Notes under the pieces: model-generated | Seen by the model: the letters and a program-made list of their open reading frames with translations, nothing else | Databases searched by the model: none | Told to the model about the DNA's origin: nothing | Origin: Chara braunii | Taxonomy: Eukaryota > Plantae > Charophyceae | Assembly: GCA_003427395.1 (NCBI GenBank) | Contig: BFEA01000018.1 | Coordinates: 2,876,315-2,940,314 of the forward strand | Direction of reading: 5' to 3' | DNA length: 64,000 bases | Made by a program: the position numbers and the translations under genes | Part shown: positions 339-27,731 of the stretch, piece by piece | How the letters are laid out: every line of letters begins with the position of its first letter | Position numbering within the stretch: position 1 is the stretch's first letter

Positions 339-995
339 TTATTTTGTTGCATGTCTTTTGTGCTTCCGGCCAAGTCCCCGTACTCTCTGAGGTTGTGGCC
401 TCTGAACGTAGAACCACCTGAATCCTATGAGCTCTGAACACTTCCAAGCGAGCCCCATGATACGCAAGTCAACCATAGCACAAAACTCCTCCCACAAAGT
501 AGGAAGATATGGCTGAGAGAAAATCCCTCGTCTCAGATACCGGAACTCTAAGGGCTCGGTTACCGCATCGTAATCAATCACCGCATGAGAGATATACCTC
601 TTGGTTAGTTCTACCAAGTCTCCCCAACAAAAACCGTATGTGAGAGGGAAAGGTACTAGAGGCTTGGGATGGTCAGTGTAGAGCTTCGGTCCAAAGCTGC
701 AGATCAGCCTGGTACCATTCTCGTCGAACTTTTTTCCTCTCTCTTCAAGACACCTGGCTGCTGTGACGCAGACTGAATCGAAGTGTTCATGAGTCTTTTT
801 GCCTTTCTTTAGATAAGACCTCAAATCATAAATGGTACCTTCTACAAAACTGGTAAAAACAATAAAGATTGACAGATCTTCCTGCCTCAAACAGGTTGCA
901 CCGAGATACTGATACTGAATTGCTTACTTGAGTGCAATCTGATTGAGATTGGTCAATACTGTCTCACTGACCGAAAATGACTGAACCGTACTCAT
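339..995 (-). pseudogene. Orphan intronless ORF (~218 codons, one in-frame stop), unknown function
   Basis: The 183-aa ORF 339-890 extends in frame to an ATG at 995 (MSTVQSFSVSETVLTNLNQIALK*AIQYQYLGATC-LRQEDL...) with one TAA in 219 codons. No recognisable domain. Confidence 0.5.
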
Positions 996-1175
996 GTGTG
1001 TAGTAGCTGCTGTCTTTCTGACTTTCTCAGTTTCGTGGTTGTATTGTTTGTTGTTCGTGTTTTAATGAAGTACCGTGTGTCCAATTGCGACCTGTCTCTG
1101 ATTCCGGTTCGTCCTCTCTAATCTGTTTCTGTTTGATGCATGTTTGTCTCTCTTGGAAATGATGACTAGATTCTC

Positions 1176-1568
1176 TTACTGATCACCAGCTACAACCCTC
1201 CTTGCTTTCTCAACAGATCCTACTGATGAGAGGGTGCTATGTAGTCTTCCGTCAACTCTATGAATGTAGTAGGTGCATTCAATCATTGTCTGATCTTTCA
1301 CCAGCGTCAGTGTGTGTGCCATCATGAACCTTGTTTGACGACGAAGACCCCGTGTCACTCTTTCTTCCCAGCCCTCGGTCCTACCCCGGTGCAATGAGCA
1401 GGTAACTCTCACTGTATCCTCGCTTCCGATCTCCCTACAGAGGCCCATCACTTTAGGGATGAATGCACTGCATTCATGCACTGCTGGGCTTGCTAGAAAT
1501 GACTCGTATATTAATGATCTTTGATATGCAGAATGCTGGCTCCGCAGGTGGCAGATAAAGGTTAACAC
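1176..1568 (-). pseudogene. Orphan ORF remnant (130 open codons), unknown function
   Basis: Protein-like open frame, same strand as and directly upstream of the 339-995 ORF. An in-frame ATG exists at 1817, but 5 stops lie in the 83 intervening codons, so the extension is unsupported. Confidence 0.3.
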
Positions 1569-3494
1569 AAGGTGGTTACCAATTAACTGCTTTTCCTGAA
1601 GATGACTGATAATTCGGTGGTTTGCTTAGTCGAAGAAATTGATTGGATCACTAAACACTTTCACTGAGAGTCATGGAAGATGTTTCAAATGTTTGAGCTG
1701 CCGTCACGGTCGTAGAGGTAAAAAGCGTACTTCAATATCCCGACTTGGTAAACTTCATACCTTGGACTGTTCCTGCTCTTCATTACTTTATAAAGTCCTA
1801 TTATACTCTTCTCTCATGATATGAAAACTTTAGTCTTGGGTGGTCCTTTTACTCGCTGCTTCATAGTATAAGCTGCAATGTTTTGCCTCCGATAATAAGA
1901 CTCACCAACAGTCTGTTACTGAGGTGTTAGTGAGCGAGACCAAGTCAAGCCACATAACAGTCAACTCATACGTCGTGGGGATCATGACTAAAACCCAATT
2001 GTTATTGATCTCAGTTCTGAAGGTACCAAGAATGGTAACTTGTTCTCAAGCTTGGCACAAAGTAGACAGTCTTCGATCCTATATGGTACGGAGTTCAGGC
2101 AGAGTGTTACTTCCGTCCATATGAGAAATAGAAGTGCCACCAGTGACCGTTCTCATGCAGATTCAACCCTGAGTTTCATTGAATGAATCTGTCTCTCACG
2201 TGTTGAGGAACAACGCAGTATGGTCCAAAGACGGGCTGCTTTTGCCCAGTACAGAGGTCATAAGCTTTGGTACTCATTGGATCAAGATAGGTTTGTCTTC
2301 CAATCGCGTTGCTTTGAGGTCTGCGTTTAGTTTTGTCTGCTAAGACAGACACCGAGGAAATGATTCATGCTTCAGGTCATGGTCGAGCTGGGTTGGCTAA
2401 GCCTGAATGGGTAAAGTATTTGTAGTAGCTCAAAGCAAGATCCTTGTCTGTTTTACCGCTAGGTCCCGCCCCCTTGGATCCCATTCACACGAGCATTTCC
2501 TGACACAACCAGGTCAAAGGTAGGTAGAAGGATGCTTACAAAGGTGATTGATTATGTCTATTTGAGATGAAGGAATGGATTGTCTTCTTTCTACCTTTCA
2601 CCTGCCTGCTTGTCAAAAAAAACTTGTTGTTTTGGAAAAATGTTATTCAAAGTGTGTCGTAGAATGGAGTCTATTGAAATAAAGCAGATAAGGTCAAACA
2701 GATTTAGCTTTTTCCAAGGATTGACACATTCTATCCTGAACGACCTTATCTACCTGTACCTGTCTAAATGATTCTCATTTTCTTTATCTCTTCTGATTTC
2801 TTTTCGTCTAAGTTACCCCGGGACTTAGGAGAAATAAAAAAATATATGAAAGCTACTTGCGGTGGACGCATCCACTATCTCTAGGAAGCATCTGGGGCGG
2901 GGGTTCGTTGATTCAGGAGCCGACCCTGTTATCGACCCAGAGTGGACCGTTCTACGGGGGGGTACTTGCCGATTCGGTGGAGACGGCCCAACTTATGAGA
3001 TTCAAGTCTGGTGCTCGAACGAGGAGGAGGAGTACCCCAGACCATTTCCTAGAGGAAGAGGCATGCTTCACGTCAAGCAATGCCCCTGATCAAGAATCAT
3101 GCGCAAACGGTTTGTCATTCAAAAAGATTGGAATGGACGAAGACAGGTATGCGCGTCGAATCTTAGATCGACAATAGGATGAAGTGAATGACTTCGGCAA
3201 CGCATCTCATCAAGTCAAAACCGAGGTTGTCCAACTACCATGCTGACAACATCAATGTTATTTTCGATTTGCCAACTTTTCGTTGGCAGTTGTTTTGATT
3301 GTTTTGTTGTATTCGACCTGAGGCGGCTGGATAGTTTTTGATCTTGTGTTATTGGATGTATGAGATGATGATTTGTATTTTTTTTTTTTTAGTCATCTTT
3401 TCATACTGGGAATATTTATTTGTGTCGGCTACGGTCGATTCCTTTTGATATAATTATATGTATGGTTGTCGTAACTTTCGTTTGACTTTATGTT

Positions 3495-3990
3495 TAAGGG
3501 ACTAGGATGAATTGTATTTTCACGCTTGGTTGAGACCGTTCTAGCCGACCGACGTTTGCTCCGTACCTAGGAGATCAGCGCCCTAAGGGACGAACGACGT
3601 TCGGGTCCGCTCGACGTTAACCAAGCGTATCTATACTATAGCGAATGAGCAAACACGCTCGACTGATCTACCTTTGCGATTGCATCTAAAAGCTTTCGCA
3701 CGTGGGTCGGTAGCTCGGTAGGGATACACCCCTAAGGGTGGTGACAACCCCTTAGGGAAGGCAAGCTTATGTCCTGCGGGAACCTATCCTGTCATAGGAG
3801 ACCACGAGATGTATAGCTGGCGTACCTGGCTAGAGCGGCGAAGGAGCGATGCAACCGCGTTCGTCTCGGCGGCTCGCGGAATGTTATGCATCGTCCCCGA
3901 GTTGTCTCTTGAAGTAAGTTTTTATTTTTACTCCTGCGTGACATGGGCGGGAGGGTCCTCGTTTTCACGCGAGGGCCGATGCGCTCGACA
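3495..3990 (+). ncRNA. Candidate large structured RNA module, copy 1
   Basis: Colinear conserved blocks shared with 10064-10605 and, except the first, with 11279-11682: TAAGGGACTAGGA, AGCGAATGAG, TAGCTC..AGGGATAC, GTGACAAC, CCTATCCT, CGGGAGGGTCC, CCGATGMGCTCGACA. Helices are conserved by compensatory changes. Confidence 0.6.
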
Positions 3991-4620
3991 GTGAGTATGG
4001 CTAAAGCTATGTTTGACAGATAAACGGGTTTGACTCTCTTACTCCTGATAGCATCTGTTGATAGGCATGTCAGTTGAGAGGAAATGTAACGTAAGATCAT
4101 GTGGCCCAAGGCTCAGCGAAGTCCGACCGATGAACTTTATCAAGCGACTTCAGCGAGTGTTCTTAGTGATATGTGATTGGATCAACCAGATAAGAGTCCG
4201 TTTTTCCTTGATCCAACATTGTTGTTTTTGCACGCTTATCTTCTGTTCTGTCACTCTTTCGACAAGAGTCGTCAACACAACATTCTGATTGACGTCGACG
4301 AGGTTAATGATATGTGTTGGTTTTCCCTGTGCATATTCATCAGGCTTTAGCCTACTAATCAAAGAGTTGTATCAGATCGGCGTCTCATCTTGGAGAAAGA
4401 GATGACCCTGTGGTAAGAGAGAAGTACTCAGATTGTGTTTTTTAATCCACGGGTGCCTTGTTATGGGCGGGAAGAAGTCTTTCATAAGGAAAGTGGCGTA
4501 CCTTCTCGCCATACTTTTACTCGATGGGGACTAATCCCTGCGCTTGCTTTTACCAGACCCCCGTAAGAGGAGGACCTTGTTGGGAAGGATCACCGAGGGT
4601 AGCTGACCACGCTTAAACAC
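3928..4620 (-). pseudogene. Decayed orphan ORF ending antisense inside module copy 1
   Basis: 231-codon frame (VFKRGQLPSVILPNKVLLLRG...MARRYATFLMKDFFPP...SRLKPDEYAQGKPTHIINLVDVNQ...) with 4 internal stops and no frameshift. Includes track ORF 4150-4362. Confidence 0.35.
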
Positions 4621-5749
4621 AATGTCTTTTTCTTGGTTCCTCTATGGTAAACAAAGAAGAGGCTTGATGTTTAAGTTTCCCTACCACCTTTAACCTTAGT
4701 CTTGTTAACAATCTTGATGGGTCTCTGCCCTTCAGTGGTAACGAGGTTTGTGCTAGTCTGAAAGAGTGCGTGGTCTCCGCTATGCTTGATATATCGTGCA
4801 AGACTCAGAGCGGAAAATACACCGCTCGCTGACGCTTCAAGAGTGATGCTCGGGTGATTGGGTTATTTGACCATTACACATCTAGTTAACTATTCGGGTT
4901 CATTATGCAGAAAAGGGTATTGACATGAAAACTTCTGTGAACATCACGACGCCGTAAGTGTTTGGTGAATCGGAACCATGTGTTCTGTGCAGTATAGGAG
5001 TGTTATATATGTCGTTGTATGTCGTGCGGGACACGTAGTGGTACTCGGTGTTGCACACATACAATTTTAGTCCTTTTTCGAAATGAATGTGCTCACTCTT
5101 AGCAACACTTAGTACTGCATAAAGACAAAATTACGCTTAACATGATAAATGGGTGGAGCATCATGATCTCTAGCGGCAAACCTCGGGAGGTATTGTGATC
5201 AACTACACTTGGGAAGGCCCACCCTTCTGCTTACTTACCTTAAATGATAGAAATAAGACCTGACAGGTCATAGTGGATTTAAACTAGTGACCCTTAGTCT
5301 GTCAACGGACTGTCAAAAAAATGAAAAGTTCATTTTGACTGTCCATATCATGCTTATTGGAGCAGGCTAGTGCCCTGAGCCGAGTGAGGCTAACGGGTCG
5401 GCAGAAGTGAACCACACCCATGAGTTGAGACAATCGGGACTTTGAGCATGGATTTAAGTCAGAATATTTAAAATCCTGCAGAAGTTGGGTTCAAGTTACG
5501 CAAAGGAAACGCGTTCAAAAGAAAACAATGCAATCCCATACTCGAGTCGGACTTTTTCATTCACATGCATGATTTACACAACTTTTATCTACCTTTTCTT
5601 TTGAATATTCAAAACGAACAGGGTCAAGCAAAGTGCGGGTCCAAACAGGCGTGAAAGGAAGTCTGAGTCATTCAACTGACCTTGAGTGAAGTTTGATCCG
5701 ACCCACTTAAGAAAATCATATAGAATTACGCTCTCTTCACGATAAGGTT

Positions 5750-5803
5750 GTCACACCCAGTCGTCAGCAAAGTGATTGACACCACTCTCTTGTGACGGCC
5801 CCC
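5750..5803. mobile_element. Possible LTR terminus and primer-binding-site-like sequence
   Basis: TGTCACACCC (5750) and TGTGACGGCCCC (5791) resemble plant Ty3/gypsy LTR termini. The minus strand reads GGGGCCGTCACA-agagag-TGGTGTCA. No partner LTR or gag-pol was found. Confidence 0.25.
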
Positions 5804-6044
5804 TGCTAGAATACCCTCTCAGCACACAATCACCTTCCAATAATCTGGCGGCGTTTTCTCGTTACCGCCACTTGTTTCCAAAGCATGGCGTCTCCGCAGC
5901 GTCACCCTCACGCCACTTTAAAATGAAACACCGCTTTGACTCACCTCCTCTATCTCAACGTCCCAACTCCACTTAGTGCAAAACTATTGTCGTTATTATC
6001 GTGAAAATAGTATCGTCACTGCAAGAATCCGATACTGACGCCAC

Positions 6045-6190
6045 AAAAAAATCTAGCAGTGCTTCCGCACTACCGCCGTTAAAACCGGAGTCGCCGCTGT
6101 AGAATTTCGGCAACACTTTCGTACCACCGCCGTAAAATCTCACGTCGCCGCCACATAATTTTGGCAGCACTTCCGTACCGCTGCCGCACA
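6045..6190. repeat. Three ~57-bp degenerate repeats with core AATTTCGGCAGCACTTCC
   Basis: aatctagcagtgcttccgcactaccgccg / aatttcggcaacactttcgtaccaccgccg / aattttggcagcacttccgtaccgctgccg. The core is the reverse complement of the 8.3-8.9 kb repeat core. Confidence 0.7.
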
Positions 6191-6465
6191 TAAGTTCTGG
6201 AGGCAGGGAATTGAAAGGTAATCATTGTTTTTCTTCTATAAACCCAGTTATAACCATATGCGCACTTTTTGCTATGTTTGACTGAATATACTGCGTGCGT
6301 CCTTATTTTGACTTTCAAGACATAATTCAGACACAAGTAAAAGAATGATTGTGCAATTTCAGTTTCAGTTTTGTTGTATTGACTGAAAGCAGATTGTGGG
6401 ATTGCATCGGGGGAAAGGTGGAATAAAGGTTGTATTGCTTGTGTCTGACTGGGTCAACCAAAGGT

Positions 6466-7190
6466 TGGGAGAGTCTCCATAAGATTGGAGGGCCCAATGC
6501 TATGTTTATTTTCGATTGCCTGAAGGACCAGAAAGGTTCCCATAAGTTTGGGCGGGTTGGTTGCTCCGACTTGCGAGGGCTGCTTGTGATTATTTTTTCA
6601 GGGACCAAGCAGATTTCCATAAGATTGGATGGTTTGGTTGTCTGGTTTCTTTCGGTTTTCTTATGTTTTATTAGTCCTGAAGGAGATTTGGGCACGTTCC
6701 ATAAGATTGGATGACCCTAACTCTCTCTTGTTTTATTTTAAGGAGGGAAATTCAGGCAAAGGACTGGACAGATTCCCATAAGATTGGGTGGTCTGGTCTG
6801 GAACCACGCACATGAATGGAATAAAAAGGCTAAATTTGTTTATATCTTATATTACTTACTTATGAACAGGCTAATCAGACATTTTTCCATAAGATTTGAT
6901 GGTCTGACTATAGCTTATCACCAACTGAAGATAGTATGAATTAAGAATAAAATTGTGGTAAGAAGGGACAGGCTGAATTTTGATCTAAGATAACCGGTTC
7001 AGTCATATGTTGCCTTAAAAGACAAAGTGCAGATAGTTATATATAACTTGGATACTTAAATGGTTCAAGGCGACTGGGCTGGCTAGCCTAGTTATGGGCC
7101 CAAAGAAGAGAAGCATTGCAGTACCATGTGTTTGTGTATATTCTATGGCTGAGCTAGACAAATTCTCATAAGATTGGGTGGTCTAACTTT
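6466..7190. repeat. Array of 7 copies of a ~20-bp motif (YCCATAAGATTGGRTGGT) with divergent spacers
   Basis: CATAAG cores at 6478, 6541, 6618, 6700, 6777, 6888 and 7167; spacings 63, 77, 82, 77, 111 and 279 bp. Confidence 0.75.
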
Positions 7191-7414
7191 ATGCCTTATG
7201 TAAGTTGGGTATAAAGGGGATAAATCATTGAAAGAATATGAACTATTGTTTGATCAGGTTGACTTGGGGTTAGTGAGAGTACTTCCCTTTGTGGTTTGGC
7301 CTGCATGTGGCTGAGTGAGATCACTACTTAGTCTGAGTTTCAGTTGATAGGTAGTTGTTTTAGTTGCTCGCCACATACTAGAGCCGAGAGATGGTTAACG
7401 GATGCATATATTTT

Positions 7415-8045
7415 CAGGGGTCCTTTCCAGGCAGTTCAACCACTTTAGGTTACTACACGACTTTCAGATTGTGTGTGGATCTATAAATAGGGTTATCTGA
7501 AACCGCCTTCAGGCAGTTCATCCACTTCAGGCTGATACATCACTTTCAGATTGCCTACAGATCCATTGCAAATGGTGGGATGGGATACCTGAAACCCCTT
7601 TCAGAAACTTCAGCCACTTCAGCAGTTTCAGGTCCCCACCTGAAATTCCTAAAATAACCTGAAGTGGCTGAAGCTTCTGAAAGGGGTTTCAGGTACCCTC
7701 ATCCAATCATTTGGATGGGGGTATATGAAACCTCTTTCAGAAGCTTCAGCCACTTCAGTGGTTTCAGGTCCCCACCTGAAATTCCTAAAATGACCTTTAG
7801 TGGTTGAAGCTTCTGAAAGTGGTTTCAGGTACCCCCATCCAAATGGTTGGATGGGGGTACCTGAAGCCCCTTTCAGAAGCTTCAGCCACTTCAGCGGTTT
7901 CAGGTCCCTACCTGAAATTCCTGAAATGACGTGAAGTGGTCATTTGGATGGGGGTACCTAAACCCCATTCAGAAGCTTCAGCCACTTCAGCGGTTTCAGG
8001 TCCCCACCTGAAATTTCTGAAATGACCTGAAGTGGTTGAAAAACA

Positions 8046-8077
<32 letters not shown>

Positions 8078-8175
8078 NNNNNNNNNNNNNNNNNNNNNNN
8101 NNNNNNNNNAAATTACCTGAAGTGTCTTTAGGCCATTTCAGCGGTTTCAGAGCACTTCAGAATCTTTCATTCTGA
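7415..8175. repeat. Tandem satellite of ~136-bp units, each containing a ~100-bp palindrome
   Basis: ttcaggtccc(c/t)acctgaaatt at ~7627, 7763, 7899 and 7995. Each unit contains ctgaagtggctgaagcttctgaaaggggtttcaggtaccccc...gggggtacctgaa..ccctttcagaagcttcagccacttcag. Interrupted by poly-A and an N gap at 8049-8109. Confidence 0.9.
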
Positions 8176-8284
8176 AATTTCAAGTGGTCGTTAACCGCGA
8201 GTGCTAGAGCCATAAGAATTAGTTTCAATTCCTGCACTTTCTGAGCTGAAGTCATTTTACTTAGGCCAATTTCTGCATTTTCTG

Positions 8285-8875
8285 GGATCTTTTATTATAT
8301 TTGTTCTTGTATAAATCTTGGTAAGCCACTTTCTTTACGGGAAACGCTGCCGAAATTTCTACAAAACTAATGAGTTAGTCAAATTTTGTCTTTTCAAAGT
8401 TCAATTTGTCTGACTTTTATATATGACTTAGTGAAAAATTGAAGAGTCTCATTTTCTAAAGGGAGTGCTGCCTTAATTTTTGCTGATTCAGGGAGTTAGA
8501 CAAAATTGGACCTTGAGAAGTCAAAGTCACTTTAGATTATGAACTTATCTTTGTATAAATCTTGGAGTAACACTTTCCTAAAGAAAGTGCGGCCGAAATT
8601 TTTACAAATGTAAGGAGTTAGTTAAATTATGTCTTAGTTGAACTCAAATTTTGCTATGGGCTCATATCTGACTTAGTAAAAATCTGGAAAGTCTTCTTTT
8701 CTAAAAGGAGTGCAACCTAAATTTTTACTAATTCAGGGAGTTAGACAAAATTTGACTTTCCAGAACTAGAGATTGTTTTTGTTTTCATATTTGAGTTAGT
8801 ATAAATTTTGAAATGACACTTTTCCTACGGGAAGCGTTGTCGAAATTTTTTTAGTCTTAGAGAAGTTAGATAGTA
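8285..8875. repeat. Five ~122-bp repeats alternating A/B (~243-bp higher-order unit), core GCTGCCGAAATTT
   Basis: Cores at ~8348, 8469, 8590, 8713 and 8837. Units 1/3/5 share gtataaat(c/t)ttg; units 2/4 share tgacttagt...ttcagggagttagacaaaatt. Confidence 0.85.
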
Positions 8876-10063
8876 TTTTGACAGGTGGCGATTCTGGCAA
8901 TTCACCCTTCATAGGGGAGATACTATCAAAGGTCTACCTTTCTTTGGGCACTGGATTAGCGGTAGACTCAGATTTTGTCATGGGAAGATTTTGAGTGAGA
9001 GTGTGTCATGGGGATTTGTTCTCCATACACTGATGATTTAGCTTGGGCATTAACCTGACCTATCTTATGATACAGGCCTTCTTTGGACATTCGATCCAGG
9101 ATTTGGACTAGTTTCAGCTTTGATCCTACGAGGATCATCTTCTGTTATCACAGATAACAGGTCGGTTGGTTGATCATCAACTCGTTGGCTCACGACACAA
9201 CTTTGCTTACACATGTACCTCAACTTGATTGTCTTAGCCCTGAAATTTGATATGTTTTTTTTAGGGTTTTAACCGGAATTCTTTTAATGACCATTATAAA
9301 GAACTTATGAGATTTATGAAAAGTTTAACTATGACTGCGGCTTGAGTGTGTGAGGCATCGTGTGAGTTACAGGGAACAATAAAGTTGACCATAATGGTGT
9401 ATAGCAATGTGGCTATCGTTTGTGCCTATGTTCTATGCATGTTAGTATTTAGAGCTTGGTATACGAGTCTTATTTTGGAGGCAGTGGGAATGACAACCAT
9501 GTGACGCACGATCTGCATACCTGATGGGGTTTATGTTTCCCCTTGTTTTATTTGATCTCAAGTTCTAAGTTGATATATGAGTAATGGGTGTTTATTTATT
9601 TACTGATTGATTTTGCTTATTAAGTTTTTATAGTTGGACGTTGTAGTCCGTGGCAGTTTTCAAAGTCAAACCCCTTGATTTCTCTCCAGACCCTGGATGA
9701 TGGAGTTGGTCTCCAGGGCGATAAGAGATAATTGTCACCACAGGTATGAACCTGTGTACCACCCATTCTCTGCAGGGTGCAGAAGATGGTGTGGTTCTCA
9801 ATCGCACTGGGCGGTTGTCCAGCGTTGAGAGATCAATCCCTCAAGGCGCATGTCAGTCGACACTTGAGTGTCGAATGCGACTCTCGAGATTAACGAGGAC
9901 CGTATGGGTATGGGTACTACATAGTACGCCATCATTGTGACTGCTTGCGTATGCTTGCATTGCGAGTCGATATGAGATTACCCCTCCATCCACGTGGTTT
10001 TATACTAAGTCTCACGCACGTTGCCTATCCGATTTCCGCATCGGAGAGTTATGGGATGGCTAC

Positions 10064-10605
10064 TAAGGGACTAGGAGTGTTGTTGCGTTGTCTGTTCTGT
10101 GTCGTTCTGAATATGTATGTATATGTGTGTGTTTTTATTTTTATGTTCTTTAGAGTGGTGTACGCGTGGTGTGTGAGATGTGTCCTAGTCGACCGACGAC
10201 GAATCGCGCTTGGGACTTCGGCCCCCCAGTGCGTCGGTTCGCATGCGGGTTCGATCGAGGCGTAAGACCTCGCGTACCCGCTATGCTACAGCGAATGAGA
10301 AACGCCCTCGGCTGGTCCACCTCTGCGATTGCAGCTGATTAACTTTCGTACTGTGGACTGGTAGCTCCGCAGGGATACGTCCACCGAAGGGAGGTGACAA
10401 CTCCCGTAAGGTGTAGGTAAGTTGTGCCTCGCGTAGGCCCTATCCTATTGTAGGGGCTCGCGAGAGGTATGGCTGGCGCACTCGGTCGGAGCGGCTTGTG
10501 GAAGCTCCATGTATATATCGCGACGAGGAATAGACCAAGTCCTGAGTAATGCGGTCGGGAGGGTCCCACCCCGTTTTGTGTAGTGCCGGACCGATGAGCT
10601 CGACA
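10064..10605 (+). ncRNA. Candidate large structured RNA module, copy 2 (best preserved)
   Basis: Helices: GACTAGGA/TCCTAGTC; GACCGA(10191)/TCGGTC(10482); a hairpin with a cUUCGg loop (10201-10240); GCGGGT/ACCCGC with CGAGG/CCTCG; GCTGGTCCAC/GTGGACTGGT; CACC-GGGAG/CTCCC-GGTG; AGTTGTGCCTC/GAGGTATGGCT; terminal GTCGGG-GGTCC/GGACC-CTCGAC. Confidence 0.65.
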
Positions 10606-11278
10606 ACGTCGCCGACGGCAAAACCAAGGGGGATAGCCCCGTCGGGCCCTCAACCTCTCGGTCCCTTCACGCTACTCTAATATCCCGAGTCGTCGCCTCT
10701 CGATCTCGATCTCTGAATCTTTCTTATGAAAGTCCGACTCTGTAACCAATAGTGTTAGGCCCAAGGTTGAGTCTAGTTTTGACAGACACCTAAATGAGGG
10801 GATATTGCGAGACGCGTAGATCTACCGAAATGTTTTCAAAATCACATTGTTGTCGATGTCGTCCTCCGCACGTACGTACAAGTCACAGGCAAGCGCAGCA
10901 ATCAGGAGACAAAATATTTTTAATCCTAGTTTAATCAGAACTAAAAATTTCGCCTGCAACTATGCAGACCTTTCAATCATCAACAAAAGAAAGGATCACA
11001 CGCGCCTTAATTCTAAGCGCCCACATACTCTCTACTCTAGCCAACCACCCAGTCAATGTAATCCGCAGACACAACCTCGCCTCACACGCTATAGGTAAAC
11101 TTCAAACCAAACTTACTTTCTGTCGCTTGCAAAAAACAGGGCGGATACCCTTGTAAGGGTATTCGCACCGGCACGACATGCGACGTTTGCTTGTTCATGC
11201 ACCAAAACAAGTATGGGTTGAGCATAAAAAAAGATAGTTGCAAATTGCACATGAGCTTTAAGTTTTGTGAGAGAAGTA

Positions 11279-11682
11279 TCGCGTGGTTGGACTGGTTGTC
11301 CAAGTCGAGTGGTATAGGATTGCGCTTGGGAGATCGGCACCTCAAGCGGCGATTCTCGTACGGGTCCGATTTGAACGTTAACAACTCGTACCCTGTATGC
11401 TACAGCAAACGAGATACGCCCTTGGTTGATCCACCTTTGCAACCAGACGTAAAAATTTTCGTTCATGGACTAATAGCTCGATAGGGATACATCCATCTAA
11501 GGGATCGTGACAACTTTCATAGGTGGAGGCAAGTTGTACCTCGCGTGACCCTATCCTGCCGTAGGGGTTTGCGAGAGGTATCGACCTGAGTGGCACTGCT
11601 CCAAGACACCTTGCGTCCTAACTTCCAAAATCCTATGTGATGCGGTCGGGAGGGTCCCCAAGCAAGACCGATGCGCTCGACA
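11279..11682 (+). ncRNA. Candidate large structured RNA module, copy 3
   Basis: Same block order. The closing helix is replaced by GAGTGGT(11307)/ACTGCTC(11595). Other helices: GGATTGC-GCTTGGG/CTCAAGC-GCGATTC; TCCATCTA/TAGGTGGA; GTTG-TACCTC/GAGGTA-CGAC. Confidence 0.6.
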
Positions 11683-12160
11683 ACGCGCCCGACGCGCCCG
11701 CTGCCCGAGAAAAAGTCCTCACCCTCACCCACCCGCACCTGTGAGAACATCATTACCCCTCTGCAGCCAAGTCCTAAATTTTTATCGGTTGCACCTACCC
11801 GTACTGATGTGGCCCCACCCACGACTTTTCCACTGGTATCACCACCTCTCTACCTCCCGCCACCCACCAGTGTCACTGCGTCACTAGTCCAAGACACCTT
11901 GCGTCCCAACTGCCAAAATCCTACGCGACGAGGCAAGGAGGGTCCCTGTGCAGGACCAATGCGCTCGACAACACATCCGACGCGCCCGCTGCCCGAAAAA
12001 AAGTCCTCACCCGCACCCGTGAGAACATCATTACCCCTCTGCGGCCAAGTCCTAAATTTTTGTCGGTTGCACCTACCCATGTCGACGTGGCCCCACCGAT
12101 GACTTTTCCACTCGTGTCACCACCTCTCTACCTCGCGCCACCGACCCGTGTCACTGCGTC
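11600..12160. repeat. Tandem duplication, ~288-bp period, including the terminal hairpin of the module
   Basis: tccaagacaccttgcgtcc at 11600 and 11888; the copies stay colinear to gtgtcactgcgtca. Confidence 0.9.
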
Positions 12161-14112
12161 ATGGCGTCATACAACAGTAAGGATGGGTAAGTTGGGGGCG
12201 GGCTTCCAAATTCGCGAAGTTTGTTAACCAAGGTTGAATTCTCCACCGGTGTTGCCACAGATCTAGGATATGCATACTTTGGCTAGATCCGCTCCCTCGT
12301 TTTTTTTTTGAAAAATTGGGCGAGGGGTTGGAATGTTGGAGCGCTCTTTCCTATTTTTTTGGCCCCAACATAACGGGCGACCCAACACGACTGTATTCAG
12401 ACCCGCTTTTTGTTTTTGTCGACCTCGGGCCTATGCACTGCACAATGAACCTAAGGCCTTTTTTTTTGGGGGTGGGGGGGGGGGGGGGGAGTCTGAAAGG
12501 CGCCAAGGGCCCAAGGGAGGGGNGGGGGGAGTTGTTTTTTCGGGTGTTCCTGGGTCTATGGGTCGGGTGACCTAAGCCAATGCTTCACCCACCTGTCACC
12601 CACTTGGCGGGTGCCCTCGGGCAAATGTTGACCCCCCATGACCTAGAAATGCCCACTAGCTGCACACGCATGTCACCCACCCAAAACGGCATAGGTAGAT
12701 CCAAGCCCAACCCCATCACCTTGTGGGTCGTGTGGGGTAGGTGGGTGCCGTTGTGAGTACCCAAGCCCACCTCTGGTTGTTACTATCGGGATCTCGACGT
12801 CTCAAATCCGCCTGAATGGTAGTTAGTAAGCTCCAACATTTAATTGTCGCCCACTTCTTTTTCGAGCACGTGCTTTGAGCCCCAACATGTCATTGATCTC
12901 CCAGTAAGCTCTCACTGACTTCTCGTTGGCCCCCTTAGGTCTTTCTAATCTTAAGGCATTTTCCCCTGTTCGATGCCCAAATCCCCTTGCTCTCCCCAAA
13001 AGTGGCATTTGTGGCCCCTTCCAAAACAAATGTTCACACTTCTCCTCCTATCCTCCTCAGTATGTCATCATCACGTCACTTCACTCGTGCGGGTTGTGAA
13101 AAACCCGATTAGATTGCAACACGTGTCTCGAGAGTAAGGTCTTGTCTAAGGTCACGTCATTTTGATTTTCTCCCTGTCACCTCTCGTCGCTCAACGTGTC
13201 AGTTTGATCCTACTTGGTTCACCCTCGTAAAACGTCAGCCTCTTACCGTTTTGTCCAAATGGCTGCCCAACCCTATATCATTCAACGTAAAATGGGTATG
13301 TGGGTCAAGCCCCTCCGCCAGCGTCGTAGCAGAGAAACCTATGACTGTGCAAACCAAACACATTTTTGGTCCTGCACGGTTTCTATTTTTTCCCGCAACC
13401 TAACCCGATTGTCAAGACATGCCTCAACATTTTGCTTCAAACTTTAATACCTCATAGTATTATCGATAGGGCTTAATCGGGCTCGTACAAAACCGATTCC
13501 GACCAGGTGTCAGTTGCTTTAGGCTGACACGGTTGACCTTGTAGCCTATTTGAGTTACTACTAGACCCTCGCTTACAATCGAGGCACTTAAATTAATAAA
13601 ATTATGACTTTTAGGTTGCTAAGTATGCAACTGATGTTTGCTCGCTTCCTTTTTTCAACCACCTCTCAAGAGCATGGTTCAACCATTGTCCACCATTGCA
13701 TCTTTGCTGCCATCGTTCGCTGCTATCGTTCACTGCCATCGTTCTTAGGATCGGAAGTAACCCCGAATCGAAGTCCCAGAAGGGCGCATGAAATTATTAA
13801 CATAGTACACACAAATAATCTTATTCAAAAATGAGCAATAGGTACCCACACCCACACCCACACCCACCCGCACCCGCACCCACCCGACCCACAAGGGAGA
13901 GTTAGGGATAGGTTTGTCTAACCTAGCCTAGGTGGGTCATGGACGGATGTAGTAAAGCCAATCTGGGCGGGTGAGATGGTTCTGTAACTCTCAAGCCTGG
14001 GTCACCCAATGAGCAGGTTGTGGGCGACTTAGGTATTATCCTTGGGTAGGTATTGGGCAGGTTGGGCCTTGGGGTGGGTTACCCGAACCAGATCACCCAA
14101 AGCATTGATCCC

Positions 14113-16057: not shown

Positions 16058-16970
16058 ACATAGTTCGGTAACCATTTTAGTCAATCGTCATTAAGTCACC
16101 TTGAAAGATTAGCGTCCTAAATTACAGTTTCTATATGGATCTGGTTTAGGCGTTTAGCCATGCGTACCCTTATGCTACCGCATGCAAATAACGCCCTTGA
16201 CTGGTCCACCTTTGCCACGATATGTAAAAATTTGCATCAAATCAATAAAGTTAGACGCTTCAGTCATGTGGGTCAGTCATACCCCTTATAACTTGTGTAG
16301 CACGGCAAACGTGTTCATGCCCCTCCACGTTTGGACGAACGTGTTGGCGCGTTTGTGCGAACAGCTCGCGAACATGTTCGGACGAACATAAGTTTTTTCA
16401 TAAACAATGTACATATATTTGATTTCAATTTTTTATTTTTCACTCATGATTGGCTAAGAATTCGAACATGCTACCAAACAACAGTTGCTTGTATTGTTGT
16501 TTTACATAATATATATATATATATATATTTTAAAATTATCATGACTCTTTTGTTTTTTTTTTAATATTTTTGTATTCGCATTCAAAGGGTTTTTGACACT
16601 TGTTTGCGTTCGGGCGAACATGTCCGCCTTCACCTCCGAACGCGAACACGGTGTTACGTAGCTTATAACCCTATATAAATTGATAGGGTTTTGTGAGGTC
16701 CAACTTACCTTTGTCAAAGGAGTTGTTACCGTCCCTAGGCCGGGCGGGTGCATTTTGGTCGAGCTATCTACATTGGAAAAAATATGTAGGTACCTAAACC
16801 AAAATGCACCCGCCTAGGGACGATAACAACTCCTTTGAAAAAGGTAAGTTGGACCTCACAAAACCCTATCCATTCATATAAGGTTATAAGAGGTATGACT
16901 GACCCACACGACCAAAGTGTCTAACTTCATTAATTTGATGAAAATTTTTATAAACTTTCGCATGACATGG
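16058..16970. repeat. AT-eroded module copy 4 rearranged into a fold-back palindrome
   Basis: 16058-16235 matches the 5' half of the module (gcgtacccttatgctac..acgcccttgactggtccacctttgc). 16224-16950 is an inverted repeat centred at ~16778, with arms of ~170 bp after removing the MITE. The arms carry agggacg(g/a)taacaactcct..ggtaagttggacctc..ccctatc..gaggtatgactg. Confidence 0.75.
16293..16661. mobile_element. hAT-type MITE (369 bp)
   Basis: 8-bp target-site duplication CTTATAAC (16285-16292 and 16662-16669), imperfect 11-bp TIR and subterminal GTTCG/CGAAC motifs. Removing it restores the palindrome arm. Confidence 0.8.
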
Positions 16971-19900
16971 TCAACAAAGACCTCGTATGAATCTCGTGTA
17001 GCAAAACCCTAATAGTTACACCTCTCTCTTCTCTATATCGAGATGAACTAACAATTTTATTGTTCTTCTTCTTCATTGCTCACTAACTCTTTTATTATAG
17101 TCTAACCATTTACTTCCACCTCTATCAATGATGAGTGTCAATCTAGCCCCTCCCCTAAAAATAACAATGTCTTACTTTACACCTCTCTATAAGTACATAG
17201 TAAAACATTAGTCAACAAAAAGACGAATAAAATGTTATGTTTAACCGCTAAGCCCGACGAAGGTAAACTGCATACACTAGTAATATTTTTTTAAAATATT
17301 TATTCTTAATCGGGTTCAACCCTCAATAAAAAATGTGTGTATATAAGCATTTCTTGAAACAAATATTTAAGTAAAAAAAATTGGATCTTAGGACAACAAA
17401 TAACTCCCTGCGGATAATAGTTGTACATAGGTCAATCAACCCTAACTTGTGATAATTTTGTGTTGACAACTCATCTCCTTCATCTTAGATGTAAATAAAA
17501 AATAAAAAAGGGATTTAAAATTTTAAGGGATACACCCTCAATCGGCGGTATACCCTATTGATAACCACATATAAGAAAAAAAACAGTAATACAACATCAT
17601 TGTGAATAAAATGTGATATAAATATGAAAAAAGGAATAAAACTGCTACTTGTTAATCCAGCTGATGAAAAATAAACATCCTACTTTGACACAAACTCATG
17701 AAAAATTTTGACGCTTCAGTTGAAAAAATGTTGGCAACATTAAGCGAAATATGTGTAATATCAATTTGAAGTTTTAAAACAAAGTAAAAATTTACGCGTG
17801 GAAAACAATACGCTTGAAGCAACCGATTAGCTGCAAGGGCAAAAATTCTTGGGTGAGTGGTAAGTTATTCCCAAAAAAATGGTTGACTTACTATTCTCAC
17901 GTATTAATTGGCATGACCAAATATTAAATATTTCTTAATAACAACATATGCGGTAATAAATAAATAGTTTGACCAATGTTGTCATACTTCTATTATCATT
18001 TTACCGATCATCCTATTTATTTGACTGAGGTATTCAATTTTTATGGTTGGCCCGTATGTCATACACGACATTAAACAAAATCATTCGACATGTGTGAGTC
18101 CATCCGATGCATGTTATAATTACACATCAGACTAACCTCTCGACCTTCATGGGTAAGGGGTTATTTGGTTTTTACCTATACCTTTTACATTGAGTATGTT
18201 ACGCCGCATACAATGTTGATGCTTATTGCACGTTTTATTGCTTCTTATCACCATCTGGTAATGTGTTTCATAAAATTAGGAAAAGAAAATCACTTTGTTA
18301 GAATTGATCTAACATAAGATAAGTCTGGTTCATGTTGCCTTGTTCTGCTCACTATCTATGTATAGTTTTTCTTTTCTTTTCTTTTGGTCATACAAAGTCT
18401 TATTACACGGTCTTGGGGACGCTGCAAGTACCACGATTCATATGACAAAGAGAGACGCATCGAATGTTTAGTAGGTAGTGGTTTCTCATTGGTTATAATT
18501 GTGAACAATAGTTGACAATGGAGTGACTCCTCTCATACCATATATAAGAATAAAAAACAGATAGGAAGAAAAAAAAAAAAAATACAGTCATTATCATTGT
18601 TGATGTACGTTGATATCGTTATCCTCCTTAACGATGACTACAACCTCATTTATCCTAACACCTTCACAACCAATATAATAAAAAATAATAATAATAAAAT
18701 ATATGAGATTGAATGGAAAGAAAAGTTATGCATTTCTTCTCTCATTTTTTTTTTATCTCTAATTTTTTGTTTCTCTTCTAACTATTATTTTTTCTCTCCT
18801 TTTTTTGTGAGCGCATATATATATATATATATGTATATGCATGATGACAACAATATCTCACTTTTTGGCACGATGATATATTTTTTACATCAGGTGTTTT
18901 AATGATTTTAGGATCATGTGGCATATGCAATACATATTCATCATATGAAAAACATTGTGTGAATATGTCATCACTATTCCTATTCGTTGCATATTGGGCC
19001 GACTAAACCCCCTATGACTTTGCCATCGACAAGAATAGAGTCTCGATATTGTATCTTAACAAGACACTTTTTTTATGTATGTTTGAATGCTAAGTTATCT
19101 TTTGAGTCTTGATTGGGTGTTGGATATTCCCTCCCCCCCTCTTTCACCTTCCTTCCTTCTGGTTTTCTCGATGTTCAATGAATATGTCTGTGCATAGATT
19201 AATATTTTTTCGTACTTTCTCACTTTCGGCAAGCGTCGTGCAAAGCGTAAATACTTTTTAAGCATGAATGCACCTTGAATCATTCGATCCAACCGATTTC
19301 GATCCAACCCCTCCCCTTTCCACTTATGGTGAATGAATGTGTAGGTTGTGTAGAATAAGAGTTTTCCGTCTCTTCAGCATGTGATGAAATTTCTATATAT
19401 TTGCTCATTCTTCATCGATGATTGTTGATTGTCATAATGGTTGACATTATGTGCATGATCTATAAATATATGTTTGTTTTGCAATTTTTTCTTCTCGCTT
19501 TCAATAAGTGTTGCATTAGACATGTATCTTTTGGAAGCGAAGAGAAAGGCAAACCTGATAGTATCGAAGTCTCTCTATCCTCCTACTATGGATGTATGAA
19601 TGAGTGTTTTTTTTTTTTTCATCTCGCATTTCGACCTTTATCGAACCTCAGACCCGTATTGACATGGTTTGTGTTTGTTTGCAATCCATCGGATAACATG
19701 ATACCCAAATGTTGTTAAATCTCCCATTACTTCTGAATTTTTTTCCTTTGAATGACTCCCGACCACGTTTTTGAAGAACTTTATTCCAAACTCACCCATT
19801 ACCTTCCTGGGTAATCCTCCCCTTTCAAAGGAACATTTGACATGAATGTCAGATCATATTGCCTGATTTCCTTCACGAGGCTTATATTTCGAGTTAATGG

Positions 19901-20699: not shown

Positions 20700-22190
20700 G
20701 AGTGAAACGAGAATAGACAAAATTGACGAAGTTCACTTGGTCGGCCATCATAAGGTTTTGGTCGAAGGGTACACCATTGATACGATAAGTATCCTTAGAG
20801 GCAACAAAGCATCCTTCAAATGGAAAGACAAAACAACGATACATCGAGTCAGGGTATTGGACAACGACAGAGAAAAATGGGGCTTTCAACCCCACACAGT
20901 CATCCAAAAGTTAACCCTTAGATACACTAGAGTGGAGATGGAAGCCCTTACAAAGTTGGGACAACCTCCCCCCTCTATGGATATAGCGTCACATCCTGAC
21001 CGTGAAGTCCACATACAAAATGCTTAGCGTGAGGCCCATACGTCATTTGAGGGATATTTGAATGTCCGATGGGCCAAACACCTTAAAATAGATTGTCGCC
21101 TTTTTACGCCAATACGTTGGTTCTAGGAGCAGAAGACCAAACCCGTCAAGATAACCTCTTTATGGCAAATAGCACATTGTTGTTTGACAACCAATAATTC
21201 GCTGATAATTACAAAAATTTGGAATAGAGAGGGCAAGCGCTACCATGGGGTTAGCAGTGCGTGTGACTTTTTCCCCCGCACAAAAGGGTGGAGACGATCA
21301 AGCACATTCTCATGCAATGCCCTATCGCGTTGTTGATTTGGAGGTGGTGGGATCGGATCTGGAGGAGGAGGATGTTAGATATACCCTGGTCATGGTCATG
21401 GCAGGCAATATTAACAGGCCATTGGTCGTCTCTGCAGGAATACCCAGCCTTCGTGGACAATATGTATACCTTAGGAAGGAGGGCCCTACTGTGGACATTT
21501 TGGTGGCAAAGGTGCCTACTTGCGATCGAGAAGGTATGGGTGGACGCGGCGGAGATCAAGGAACAAATCCTACAGCAGGTACAACTAGAGCTAATGCGAA
21601 AATCTCCCTATCCGCAGTTGGACATCTTTGTTCAGATTGGAGATATCAGACGAGCAATCACCACATTCTGCACAGAGTGGTTGGGAGGGGAGAGGGGGGG
21701 ATGGATAGAAACAATAGATTGGAGTGGGGACAAATCGGAGAACCAACAGCGTATGGAAGGGATGATAGATTATCATCTGTTGTTCAAAGACGGGTACATG
21801 TTGATCCCTCTTTCCCCCTGCGCCCCCCCTCAAACTTTCCTGATCTCTCCCCAACCCATGCCCTTTTTTTAGCCGAGATTGCTTTACAAAGGTTGGCGCC
21901 ACTTCGACAGGTAAGCAACCCCCTTTAGTGCCCCCCAACAGGACTGGTTCCCTGTCCACACGACATGCGCTTGGCCCTCTTGGTGCCCCCCAAGGAATGT
22001 CGGCTTCTTTACCAATCTCAACAGGAGGAAAGGTGCTAGGAGAGCAGGTGGGATATGGCGCGCGAGACAAGGGTGAAGAGGCATTGGCCGAGGATATGAA
22101 GACTCAATTTTTTGGATGGTTCAGTTTTTTTTGCTGCTCAGTTAACCCCCCGTTCTCGCTGGGGCAGTCAATGTTGGCAGCCACGACAAT
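20700..22190 (+). mobile_element. 5'-truncated L1/Tx1-like LINE (ORF2 C-terminus and 3' UTR)
   Basis: ETIKHILMQCPIALLIWRWWDRIW (zf-RVT region) is colinear with the 43161-44993 ORF. The 3' UTR at 22133-22180 matches the reverse complement of 42540-42590. Confidence 0.85.
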
Positions 22191-22204
22191 ATTCTCATTC
22201 CTCA

Positions 22205-25200
22205 TTTTTTTTTTATTATTTTTTTTTTTCTTGGATGGCTCCTCTATTAGTAGGGAGCAACACTTGCTAGAAAGCGGGTCCAGCGTCCCTTCATACATTT
22301 TACAGAGTTTGAACCATGATAGTTGTTGTAAGGAGCCTCCTACTGAATTGTTCGTAGGTTAAACACCCCGTGTTGTTCTTATCAGTTTCATGTATAAGAG
22401 CACGCACTTGGTTAAGCTAGTGAGCGGTTTCTGTTAAGGACACTGAACTGATAAACCCTCAACCTTGTTCCCATAAGTCTCTGTACCCCCTCTATTCAGT
22501 ATCCCTCAATCCCTTGTCTCCTTTCTCTGGCCCTCTTCGCTCCTGTGCAACTTTAGTTGTTCCTACTGTCCCCTTTCTGTCTATCATCCCAACCCCCTCG
22601 ATTCCTTCATTTCCTACCGGCCCTTTGGCCCAGGCAGTCTTGTCATGTATCCCCGTTTGTTAATCTTTACTCAGTACATCCCAAATGGCTGAATGGGGTT
22701 TGACTCATAGTGGAGGAGGGGCAAACAGCAGGCCAGGGTAAAGGGAGGGACATAACGTCGATTTCAGGAGAGGAACTTGAAGGGGGGGGGCTGCTGGGAA
22801 TCGTAGATGGAGGCAGGGGGCAGGTGTTGGTTTGATCTATTGGAAGGGGGAGGGACCAGGATAAAGTTTGGTTCTTGGTAGGGGACCATGAAATGAGATT
22901 GAGGGAGTCGCTCCCACGTGGGTTCCTTCGCCACCCATCTGCGCCAAATGAGGTTGTCTTGGTCGTCCAGAGTAGCCAGCTTCCTGTTTTTGTCTAGCCA
23001 TATGGACTCAAAGATATCTTTACACTGTTGCCTCTCGTTCTGATCTTTTGCGTCAGTGAGGTCCTTTTTAAGTTGCTCCCAGGATACTTGAGTATGGTTC
23101 GTGATTGTTGCAATCGTCGACTCCCTTGCTTGTAGATAGCCAAAGAAACCTTTGTCCCTTTCGTGGGAGCAGTGTATTCTCCAGGCCAACAACAGTAGTA
23201 TGAGTCTCATGTAAGAGACGAGGTTAGTTGCGAAGGTATCCCATTGATGGGACTGAGGGCTATGTTCGCCTAACAGATGAGGGGAAAACTCCAAGGGAGA
23301 TGCTGACCAACCAGGTGATGCCATAGCGAGTCCCACCAACTCCAGAGTTGTACCACCATCGGACATGCCAGCAAACAGTGTTTGAGTGTTGCTCTCGCTG
23401 CTGGCAAGGATTTCCCACAATAAGAGCAAATCGGGGAGAGGATGCCGAGCTGCTCCAGGTCTGTGCGGGAGACAATCTAGCCCGGGGTGGGAAGGCATCT
23501 ATGGAGGATCTGCCACTGCAGGGCTCGGTGGGCCGTTGGCGTGATCTTGGAATAGCGAGACCATGATAGGTTGCCGAGGTCTTGTCGAGTGAGCGGGGAG
23601 TCCCTTTCCATCCACTTTTTACTACTTCTGTCGTCCGGGGGGTGACCCGTGTAGCTCTGTATCCTTCCTTGACTGTGTACTCTCATATGAGGGTTCGTTT
23701 TTCTGTGTTCCATTCCCATTCTGCAGGGTCGAATGGCAGCCTGTTGATGGGGGTGTTGGGCTCGTATGCCCATTTTTTGAGCTGTTTGTTTTCCAACACC
23801 CTCACGCTCATGAGATGATAAGGCGGTACCGTGACCTCACAGTCCCTTTCCTCTTGCTTGGTAAGTGCGGACCATTTTTCCCCTGGCAAGTCCATCTTGA
23901 ATGCCTCTAGCTTGGCCATGTTCGGACAAGTTTGTGAGACTTTATACACAGTCGTCGGCAGGGGAAGGGACCGAAATTGGACCATCTAATCCCCCACCCT
24001 GAGCGTCGGGCCTGTTTTCAAGGCTAGTGACCACCCTATGCCAGTGGGAATGACCTCGATTACTGGAGCCATTTTCTATTCCAAAATTTCTAATGTTTTT
24101 TAAGTGCTGTTTAAGTTTCTCTAGGGTTTTCCAACTGCCTGTTGTAGAGTCCCAAAGGTCCCCATCTGTGTAGCAACCCCTTCTCACCCAGGCCACCCAT
24201 GTGGAGTCTTGGTGCAGGTCGAATACATTTCCCGCTTCGTCCGGCACCTTCGGGTTTCCGAAGAGCGGTTGTCTCTGCACCTCGTGCCATCTCAGCGGGG
24301 CCGTGGTCTGCTTAGGGCCTTTGTTTCTCCAAAGTCGAAGCATGAAGTCCCAATGCGGGTCCACTTGTAGGTCCCTTTTTGCTTGGTTTGATGGCAAGTC
24401 GTCCTTGGTGAGGAGGGATAGGCCAGATGGGATTTGTAAGCCATTGTAGGGGGTGTTGAGGGATGGACGACCCCACGTCTGGGGCCAAGTTGATGAGTTG
24501 GATGTATGCCAGGGGGGACCGGGGGATGTCATTCCCCAACAATATTCTTATGATGAATTTAAACAGTACTGTATCAGTCTCGTCGGCTGGTCGATAATCC
24601 CTAGTCCACCCTTGGCTCTTCGTTGGGCCACATACTACCAGCAACTCTATACAAACATTGGCCTTCTCCCCCCTCATTTTTTTGAAGGTATGTAGCGACC
24701 GCTCGTTGCAGGTGGGATAGTTGCTTGGTTGTCAAGCGCCATAATGCTGTCTTGTACTAGATGGAGGCCAAGATAAAACTGTTTATGGTTAGGGCCCTTC
24801 CAATCAGTGCAGTGTGAATGCCTTTCCATTTGGAGATTTGTTTGAGGGTCAGTTCTACTAGCGAGTCCCGTTGTCCTGTGGCGGGCCCAATGTTGTAAGT
24901 CTCACCCCCAACACCCTGATGGCCTCCTTCTATGCCCACCACGTGACCGCTGGTTGCGACGGAGGGGGGTGGCCTTATGCATGGAGTGACCATCCCTCAG
25001 TTTTTGTCCCCAAGTTTACTTCCATATCCGCAACCATTAAGAAAAGATTGACCGCTTTTTCCACTGTACCTCTCTCATTCGTCTTCATGAGGACTGTGAG
25101 GTCATCCACAAACAGAGAGGTTACTGGGACAAGATGGGAGAGGATCTTTGGGATGCTTATTTTCTGAATGTGAGGGTGGACCCTTATCATTGCGGCTAGA

Positions 25201-27543: not shown

Positions 27544-27693
27544 NNNNNNNNNNNNNNNNNNNNNNNNNNNNNNNNNNNNNNNNNNNNNNNNNNNNNNNNN
27601 NNNNNNNNNNNNNNNNNNNNNNNNNNNNNNNNNNNNNNNNNNNNNNNNNNNNNNNNNNNTGGAAGGCAAAGTTGACACGCGTACGTGTGTGGC

Positions 27694-27731
27694 CTGTCTC
27701 TTATACACATCTAGATGTGTATAAGAGACAG
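27694..27731. other. Nextera mate-pair junction adapter (assembly artefact)
   Basis: Same 38-mer. The preceding 34 bp (27660-27693) are identical to 32583-32616, ~4.9 kb away. Confidence 0.98.

Follow-up and report, generated by a model that had tools for sequence, protein, structure and literature searches.

A folded RNA module of about 400 bases in Chara braunii, a candidate cis-acting element of an LTR retrotransposon lineage

RNA structure is conserved in non-autonomous LARDs (PMC7215508), and the core domain of Sukkula-type LARDs combines a long LTR, a PBS, a structured non-coding internal domain and a purine tract (PMC7215508), a layout that the Chara braunii element described here appears to share through its LTR-like, PBS-like and PPT-like parts. 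The likeness is one of architecture and has its limits: no matched LTR pair was found in the Chara element, it comes from a streptophyte alga rather than from grasses, and its module also lies within unrelated flanks. Structured export elements are known within LTR elements, namely the musD MTE and the IAP RTE (PMC12786077, PMC5767303). Like these and the HIV RRE, the module is a multi-arm RNA of several hundred nucleotides that lies in an LTR element and may make long-range contacts; unlike them it has no sequence or Rfam match, and an export role in Chara is one that we infer. A 2025 review points out that no direct study has been made of how the RNA of plant LTR retrotransposons is exported (PMC12786077). 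The Psi/DIS regions of retroviruses and Ty1 are comparable in being required in cis by non-autonomous RNAs and in their alternative pairings, whereas the Chara module lies 1.2 kb from a PBS-like site and has no conserved palindromic loop.

The OTA superclade of Ty3/gypsy elements (Athila/Tat/Ogre) is characterised by large LTRs with tandem arrays, large non-coding regions, orphan extra ORFs and a PBS of non-Met tRNA type (PMC6317226). Two features of the Chara sequence recall this superclade, a long LTR-like segment with tandem arrays and the orphan ORFs on the minus strand close to copy 1, but no RT/RH/INT or aRH by which to classify the element lies near any module copy, and the OTA-type traits (large LTR with tandem arrays, orphan ORFs, PBS-like site) belong to different, nested pieces. 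Literature searches found neither a description of a structured RNA of this kind in OTA elements nor a structurally defined packaging element for plant LTR retrotransposons. An RNA of ~400 nt whose structure is conserved over diverged families and thousands of copies provides a concrete candidate that can be mutated. It would constitute a new Rfam family, with a known range of one algal genome and a function that we infer, and the natural variation among its copies suffices for a full covariation model.

Copies, arms and search for relatives

Three copies and two relics of the module were found in the window, i.e. the whole 64,000-nucleotide stretch analysed (Table 1), in agreement with the several diverged copies reported in an earlier note on this DNA. 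Copies 1, 2 and 3 are pairwise 69–74% identical across ~250–270 nt (blastn, E 1e-15 to 1e-38). The flanks were also said to be unrelated, and a flank comparison of copies 1 and 2 revealed no shared sequence outside the module. Covariance model (CM) matches in the fold-back relic lie at 16786–16903 (+) and 16657–16771 (−), both of them partly contained in the CM training set.

Table 1. Coordinates of the module copies and associated features in the window
Feature	Position	Strand	Remarks
Orphan antisense ORFs	339..1625	-	183 aa and 130–149 aa; upstream of copy 1; eORF-like
Module copy 1	3500..3990	+	5' hairpin P0, arms A–E, long variable region, hairpins X and Y
LTR-like segment TGTCACACCC...TTTTGACA	5749..8883	+	3.1 kb; internal tandem arrays; holds N gap; assigned from terminal motifs only
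PBS-like TGGCGATTCTGG	8886..8897	+	2 nt past LTR end; non-Met tRNA type
Second structured conserved block, same element	9650..9950	+	upstream of copy 2; z -7.1, -3.4 and -3.4
Module copy 2	10069..10605	+	belongs to high-copy family; most conserved part is core 10190–10490
Arm C domain of copy 2	10274..10378	+	closure probably GTAYCC(C) (10274–10279) with GGGATAC (10372–10378)
Arm D of copy 2	10381..10414	+	G-GTRA-C loop, AAC bulge
Arm E of copy 2	10420..10474	+	best-supported arm; P 0.92–0.97 in copy 2
Purine tract 11131–11145, then TGTAAGGG at 11152	11131..11190	+	PPT-like, with truncated LTR start
Module copy 3	11289..11682	+	divergent, low-copy relative
Relic, duplicated 3' hairpins of copy 3	11882..11988	+	tandem unit of ~280–290 nt from copy 3 tail
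Fold-back relic	16058..17000	.	arm C pieces at both ends; arms D–E on both strands

The arm helices quoted in the earlier note are present in the copies, but two of the pairings that it proposed were not supported. The closing helix with its five-way junction has a pair probability of about 0 in full-length folds, and its register differs in copy 1. A 6-bp pseudoknot between GGGATA and TATCCT was rejected, as TAT is already paired in the apical hairpin of arm E (P 0.76–0.92) and the loop CCT is lost in what the note numbered copy 4. GGGATAC more likely pairs with the upstream GTAYCC(C), although the probability of this pairing in full-length folds is 0.84 for copy 1 and close to 0 for the other two copies. 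The read consensus at 10300 is GGGTATCCC (agreement 0.65). Arm A carries GATC in copies 1 and 3 and CTTC in copy 2, so that no palindromic dimerisation loop is conserved across the copies. The AG/GATGMG internal loop was considered as a K-turn and rejected because the register fails and M varies.

A search of Rfam 15 gave no relevant match at gathering level nor at E up to 10, which agrees with the earlier view of the module as a candidate undescribed RNA. RNase P, 5S and telomerase RNA were rejected (no model match, no template). Exact-pattern scans of IMG/VR, JGI metagenomes and GTDB genomes, repeated so as to accept R at 10371, where the family majority is G and not A, did not reveal the module; two viral matches to the loosest pattern were judged to be due to chance. 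Nothing was found in plasmids and phages by blastn. Neither blastn nor nhmmer nor a CM search detected the module in nine other Chara loci, a sample of 247 kb of non-N sequence weighted towards annotated L1 and gypsy genes; the RT motifs that were read in these loci look chromovirus-like.

The repeat family and the element around copy 2

Reads were placed on positions 9200–12200 of the window (3 kb; 37,020 contigs), i.e. the region of copies 2 and 3. The summed DNA depth reached 633k at 10311–10411, compared with 2k–12k in neighbouring internal sequence and 5–9 for unique contigs. The repeat that contains copy 2 thus has a copy number on the order of thousands, and the module is its most conserved core. 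Its flanks are themselves high-copy and continuous in the reads, with 75k–230k over the second structured block and a peak of 172k over the PPT-like region. The family is transcribed, and RNA reads also peak on the module core (about 257 vs 10–45 nearby).

Copy 2 lies within a 2.27-kb stretch that contains no ATG ORF above 104 aa and has no coding capacity. The stretch is bordered by a putative PBS after an LTR-like end and a PPT-like tract before a putative LTR start. The LTR-like segment ends TGTCA...TGACA, followed by GG and TGGCGA; it was read as an LTR from these terminal motifs, and no partner LTR was found for it. The N gap at 8078–8109 lies inside this segment and touches no module copy, and continuity across it is plausible because identical repeat motifs occur on either side. 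The PBS-like pattern, which we take to be tRNA-Arg-like, has one match in the window, where 0.31 is expected by chance. The LTR starts disagree (TGTCACACCC at 5749 vs TGTAAGGG at 11152, beginning TGTAAG), the 3' LTR being truncated, and two matching LTRs with a target-site duplication were not found around copy 2. A minus-strand orientation of the LTR was rejected because no purine tract occurs at 8885.

With its non-coding, conserved, structured and high-copy internal domain, the copy 2 element resembles a LARD, and these sequence features suggest a LARD-like derivative of Athila/Tat type. Neither gag-pol beside any module copy nor a recognisable LTR or PBS at copies 1 and 3 was found. For the orphan ORFs no Pfam domain, homologue (among proteins of 0.55–1.75 times the query length), Atlas match or mutual similarity was detected. 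The earlier note had allowed that the module might simply be the LTR/leader junction of a retrotransposon. This objection applies in part: the module does lie within an LTR-type repeat family, but as an internal element and not at that junction. The framing as a free-standing ribozyme, IRES or RNP scaffold found no support; the module forms the conserved core of an abundant repeat family of LTR type.

Possible roles of the module

On balance we favour a cis-acting structured RNA of an Athila/Tat/Ogre-like LTR lineage that serves packaging/dimerisation or export. The host would be a non-chromovirus Ty3/gypsy LTR lineage of Chara braunii carrying the module internally, and even derivatives of LARD type that code for nothing, among them the copy 2 element, would retain it. 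Within the full-length element RNA it would most likely fold as successive domains, namely A, B, C (closed by the GTAYCCC/GGGATAC pairing), D (with its GNRA loop), E and X/Y. It may act as the handle for packaging and dimerisation of the RNA by Gag provided in trans, or alternatively in the export of unspliced element RNA out of the nucleus. The lineage and the place of the module within an autonomous element are unproven because no gag-pol adjoins any copy. Counting against this cis-acting role, first mates map ~3:1 to the + strand in run X22, which would mean mostly antisense RNA if the library is of dUTP type (strandedness uncalibrated).

A new catalytic RNA or an RNP scaffold (for instance one bound by a Rev-like protein that the element's antisense orphan ORFs encode), exchanged modularly among Chara giant-LTR elements, is unlikely; if true, it would represent a new class of large structured RNA in the green lineage.

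Translation control is improbable as well. Some LTR-element leaders contain IRESs, and in autonomous relatives an IRES or similar device could drive gag or an extra ORF that follows a very long 5' leader, in which case the local copies would be passengers; the size, GNRA loops and multi-arm fold of the module and the position of copy 2, 1.2 kb downstream of the PBS-like site, would suit this. However, no credible + strand ORF follows copy 1, 2 or 3, and yet no part of this ORF-less, high-copy family is as well conserved as the core. Packaging or export is favoured because an ORF-less element keeps just what its RNA needs in cis.

A ribozyme that processes the element RNA, whether new or degenerate and whether of self-cleaving, lariat-capping or group II-derived type, is quite improbable. 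In its favour, the invariant motifs TTTCG, TAGCTC, ACAAC and GATGMG are unpaired, and competing helices in the predicted folds suggest a switch. The GNRA-capped arm GGTGACA and the 3' CTCGAC, which we take to recall the ends of group II domains I and VI, are accompanied by a GGCAAG junction also reminiscent of these introns. In contrast to a group II intron, the module has no GUGYG start, and neither the Intron_gpII and D1–D4 models nor inspection revealed a domain V with its AGC catalytic triad or a conserved domain VI branch A. Group II, group I, hammerhead, HDV and twister models gave no match at E up to 10 (short stretches), and the hammerhead was also rejected because the CUGANGA-GAAA order is absent on both strands. 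No RNA joints occur among those listed, and no read start or end pile-ups mark cleavage, both being weak tests as the reads are poly(A) and derive from diverged copies.

It is similarly doubtful that the module is an independent non-coding RNA or SINE-like unit which has its own promoter and was captured by various repeats: the unrelated flanks, the abundance of the core far above its surroundings, a weak A-box-like TAGCTCGGTAGG and the acceptor-like (TTTAAG/G) and donor-like (CA/GTGAGT) sites edging copy 1 speak for it, whereas the copies end without poly(A) tail, target-site duplication, downstream B box or oligo-T terminator, and high copy number extends without a break into the sequence on either side of copy 2.

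Covariation and strand of the fold

When the helices were aligned by hand, canonical pairs occupied 227 of 239 helix cells (95%), and 8 compensatory columns were counted against a null mean of 1.7 (P ~0.0007, an optimistic value since the helices were picked by eye). On a MAFFT alignment the tool count gave 86.7% paired, with 0 of 500 shuffles as good; the covariation score was equalled by 8/500 shuffles and the compensatory-pair count by 44/500, which is not significant. With this reservation the helices change in sequence while pairing is kept, as the earlier note had claimed. Read on the + strand, the hand-aligned helices hold 31 G-U against 7 A-C, and therefore a + strand RNA is favoured, again in line with that note. 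Together with the lack of an Rfam match, these results support the module as a structurally conserved + strand RNA that was previously undescribed.

There is only a small chance that the pairing instead reflects a structure at the ssDNA or cDNA level, or a decaying relic in which transitions driven by methylation, together with the picking of helices by eye, give the look of covariation. Transitions do dominate the substitutions among copies (70 vs 28), three sequences give little power, the compensatory-pair count is not significant, and the folding z of the copies is just −1.3 to −3.8. Against this, the G-U excess is accompanied by several A-U/U-A and C-G/A-U swaps within helices, and the GNRA loop is maintained through a GTGA/GTAA exchange. 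In the reads, variation at family level falls in a loop at 10265–10266, and the family majority base at 10414 is G, which restores the C-G pair of arm D.

Pairing and fold of the module

The three copies of the module, a folded RNA of ~400 nt, were recovered by blastn with pairwise identities of 69–74% across ~250–270 aligned nt. Their existence agrees with the earlier note, as does the lack of any relation between the flanking sequences of copies 1 and 2. Its observation that pairing is kept while helix sequence changes was likewise borne out: 15 helices aligned by hand hold canonical pairs in 227 of 239 cells, and both sides have changed in 8 columns against 1.7 expected if substitutions were independent with transition bias matched, figures that are optimistic since the helices were chosen by eye. 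The reported excess of G-U over A-C cells on the + strand also holds (31 vs 7, same eye-chosen helices). In the unedited MAFFT alignment 86.7% of cells are paired, which none of 500 shuffles reached (slid registers, 29–48%); the covariation score was matched by 8 of 500 shuffles and the compensatory-pair count by 44 of 500. Folding z-scores of the copies range from −1.3 to −3.8 on the + strand. We conclude that the module is a real structured RNA family, apparently undescribed.

No Rfam family matched, and short stretches scanned with E values as high as 10 gave nothing either, in keeping with the first reading, which had recognised no known class. Neither patterns nor blast found anything in viral, metagenomic, prokaryotic, phage or plasmid collections (exact patterns miss distant relatives), and literature searches turned up no description of an RNA of this kind in Chara. 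A group II intron, whose domains I and VI the module presumably resembles, was rejected because domain V is absent; the earlier note had not recognised one either.

Partition functions showed stable arms D and E in each of the three copies; for arms A and C2 this holds in one or two copies. The proposed closing helix has a pair probability of ~0 in full-length folds and would require a different register in copy 1, which leaves the five-way junction unproven. We rejected the GGGATA/TATCCT pseudoknot: it clashes with the apical hairpin of arm E, a competitor whose pairs alternate between A-U and G-U, and the relic copy 4 disrupts its loop. GTAYCC(C), immediately 5' of arm C, is predicted to be a better partner for GGGATAC than TATCCT, with a pairing probability of 0.84 in copy 1 and ~0 in the other two copies, the base of arm B being its competitor there. 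The read consensus at this site, GGGTATCCC (agreement 0.65), is a perfect 7-bp match to GGGATAC. At the 3' end, hairpin X (GYRA-started loop) and GTCGGG/CTCGAC are rival pairings.

Both partial copies claimed earlier exist, as a piece of a tandem duplication of the copy 3 tail (11882–11988) and as a fold-back relic with arms D–E on both strands (16058–17000). The latter is a MITE-like element made of inverted module pieces. An N gap at 8078–8109, with repeat motifs shared by its two sides, lies outside every copy.

The element around copy 2 and its family

The 2.27 kb around copy 2 contain no ATG ORF above 104 aa. Judged by its sequence layout (see table), this region is a putative non-autonomous LARD-like LTR element; no pol by which to classify its lineage was found near any copy. 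The PBS pattern alone is expected 0.31 times per window by chance, and the LTR starts at 5749 and 11152 differ, the 3' one being truncated. Large array-bearing LTRs, a non-Met PBS and orphan extra ORFs are hallmarks of the Athila/Tat/Ogre group (PMC6317226), and similar features occur here, though spread over different, nested pieces: a large LTR-like segment with arrays, a non-Met PBS-like site and orphan ORFs.

Features of the window
Feature	Position	Strand	Remarks
LTR-like segment	5749–8883		3.1 kb, upstream of copy 2; starts TGTCACACCC, ends TTTTGACA; tandem arrays inside
PBS-like site	8886–8897		2 nt past segment end; TGGCGATTCTGG; non-Met type
Purine tract	11131–11145		downstream of copy 2
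Putative LTR start	11152		TGTAAGGG; high-copy in its own right
Module copy 1	3500–3990	+	
Module copy 2	10069–10605	+	
Module copy 3	11289–11682	+	
PsbO gene	29763–30776		intronless; its protein clusters with one of Chara braunii, and it maps to scaffold BFEA01000018.1 with no differences
U6 snRNA match	33584–33672		model positions 1–83, then poly A
Direct repeat	33710–35195 / 40960–42445		1486 bp, 99.9% identical, 7250 bp apart; adjoins U6 match
Two decayed L1-type LINEs	22000–28000, 43000–50600	minus	endonuclease, RT, C-terminal zinc-binding region

On 9200–12200, 37,020 contigs of a DNA run were placed. Their summed depth, which is not a copy number since short contigs overlap, was 633k at 10311–10411, 75k–230k at 9604–10108 and 172k at 11119–11219, against 2k–12k between these peaks and 5–9 for unique contigs. 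Allowing for an overcount of up to ~30-fold, and with no module copy in nine other Chara loci (247 kb), thousands of copies is a fair estimate of family size. The core of copy 2 (10190–10490) is conserved across the family far above its flanks; the majority base at 10414 restores a pair in arm D, and those at 10265–10266 differ within the arm B loop. Copy 3 is a low-copy outlier.

A second conserved, structured, high-copy block (9650–9950; folding z −7 in a 150-nt window) lies 120 nt upstream of copy 2, is absent from copies 1 and 3 and has no Rfam match. It begins directly after an acceptor-like TTTTTATAG at ~9633. At 11141–11165 the purine tract and putative LTR start fold as a hairpin, GCGGATACCCT/AGGGTATTCGC with loop TGTA, which is conserved at high copy and could alternatively be a minus-strand self-priming site. 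Within the LTR-like segment, a 136-bp tandem array of near-perfect hairpins (7569–8036) gave only sub-threshold miRNA-model matches, and short CCATAAGATTGG repeats form an array at ~6480–7200.

Transcripts and candidate role

Family reads numbered 53 of 8.9 million and 2,782 of 16.7 million in two oligo-dT runs. Only 10 are at least 99% alike, so the reads come from other family members. Both directions occur; first mates of run X22 at the core lie ~3:1 on the + strand (strandedness uncalibrated), and may represent mostly antisense RNA. The ~28-fold gap in family read share between X21 and X22, runs of the same study, suggests condition-dependent transcription.

The module is best filed as a cis-acting RNA of LTR retroelements, its membership in any family being unproven. 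An ORF-less element copied via RNA would retain only the cis needs of that RNA, i.e. sites for priming and the signals by which it is exported, dimerised and packaged, for which an autonomous partner element would supply the proteins. Conserved RNA structure in LARDs (PMC7215508) offers a precedent to which the module is likened; as a candidate export element inside an LTR-type repeat it may also be compared with the musD MTE and IAP RTE (PMC12786077, PMC5767303). From sequence and analogy, a packaging/dimerisation or export signal, taken jointly, is a somewhat favoured candidate role, and we lean slightly towards packaging, since no non-autonomous element can do without it. Conservation in an ORF-less element fits this role and fits an IRES poorly, which we consider unlikely. 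A ribozyme is slightly less probable still: oligo-dT reads on 9200–12200 show no start or end pile-ups and no RNA joints among those listed, which argues weakly against splicing or cleavage. A stand-alone RNA, and a DNA-level or decayed structure, are each as doubtful as the ribozyme.

Surroundings of copy 1 and the repeat pair

Copy 1 is surrounded by minus-strand orphan ORFs, for which no homologues were found. Directly 3' of it, at 4050–4510 on the minus strand, lies the remnant of a further orphan ORF, interrupted by an internal stop and oriented like the orphan ORFs at 339–890 and 1176–1625. The 1486-bp repeats are possibly an LTR pair or an assembly duplication, with a U6 retrocopy. The borders of copy 1 have an exon-like arrangement, a T-rich acceptor-like AG|G (3480–3499) and a donor-like CA|GTGAGT (3990–3996).
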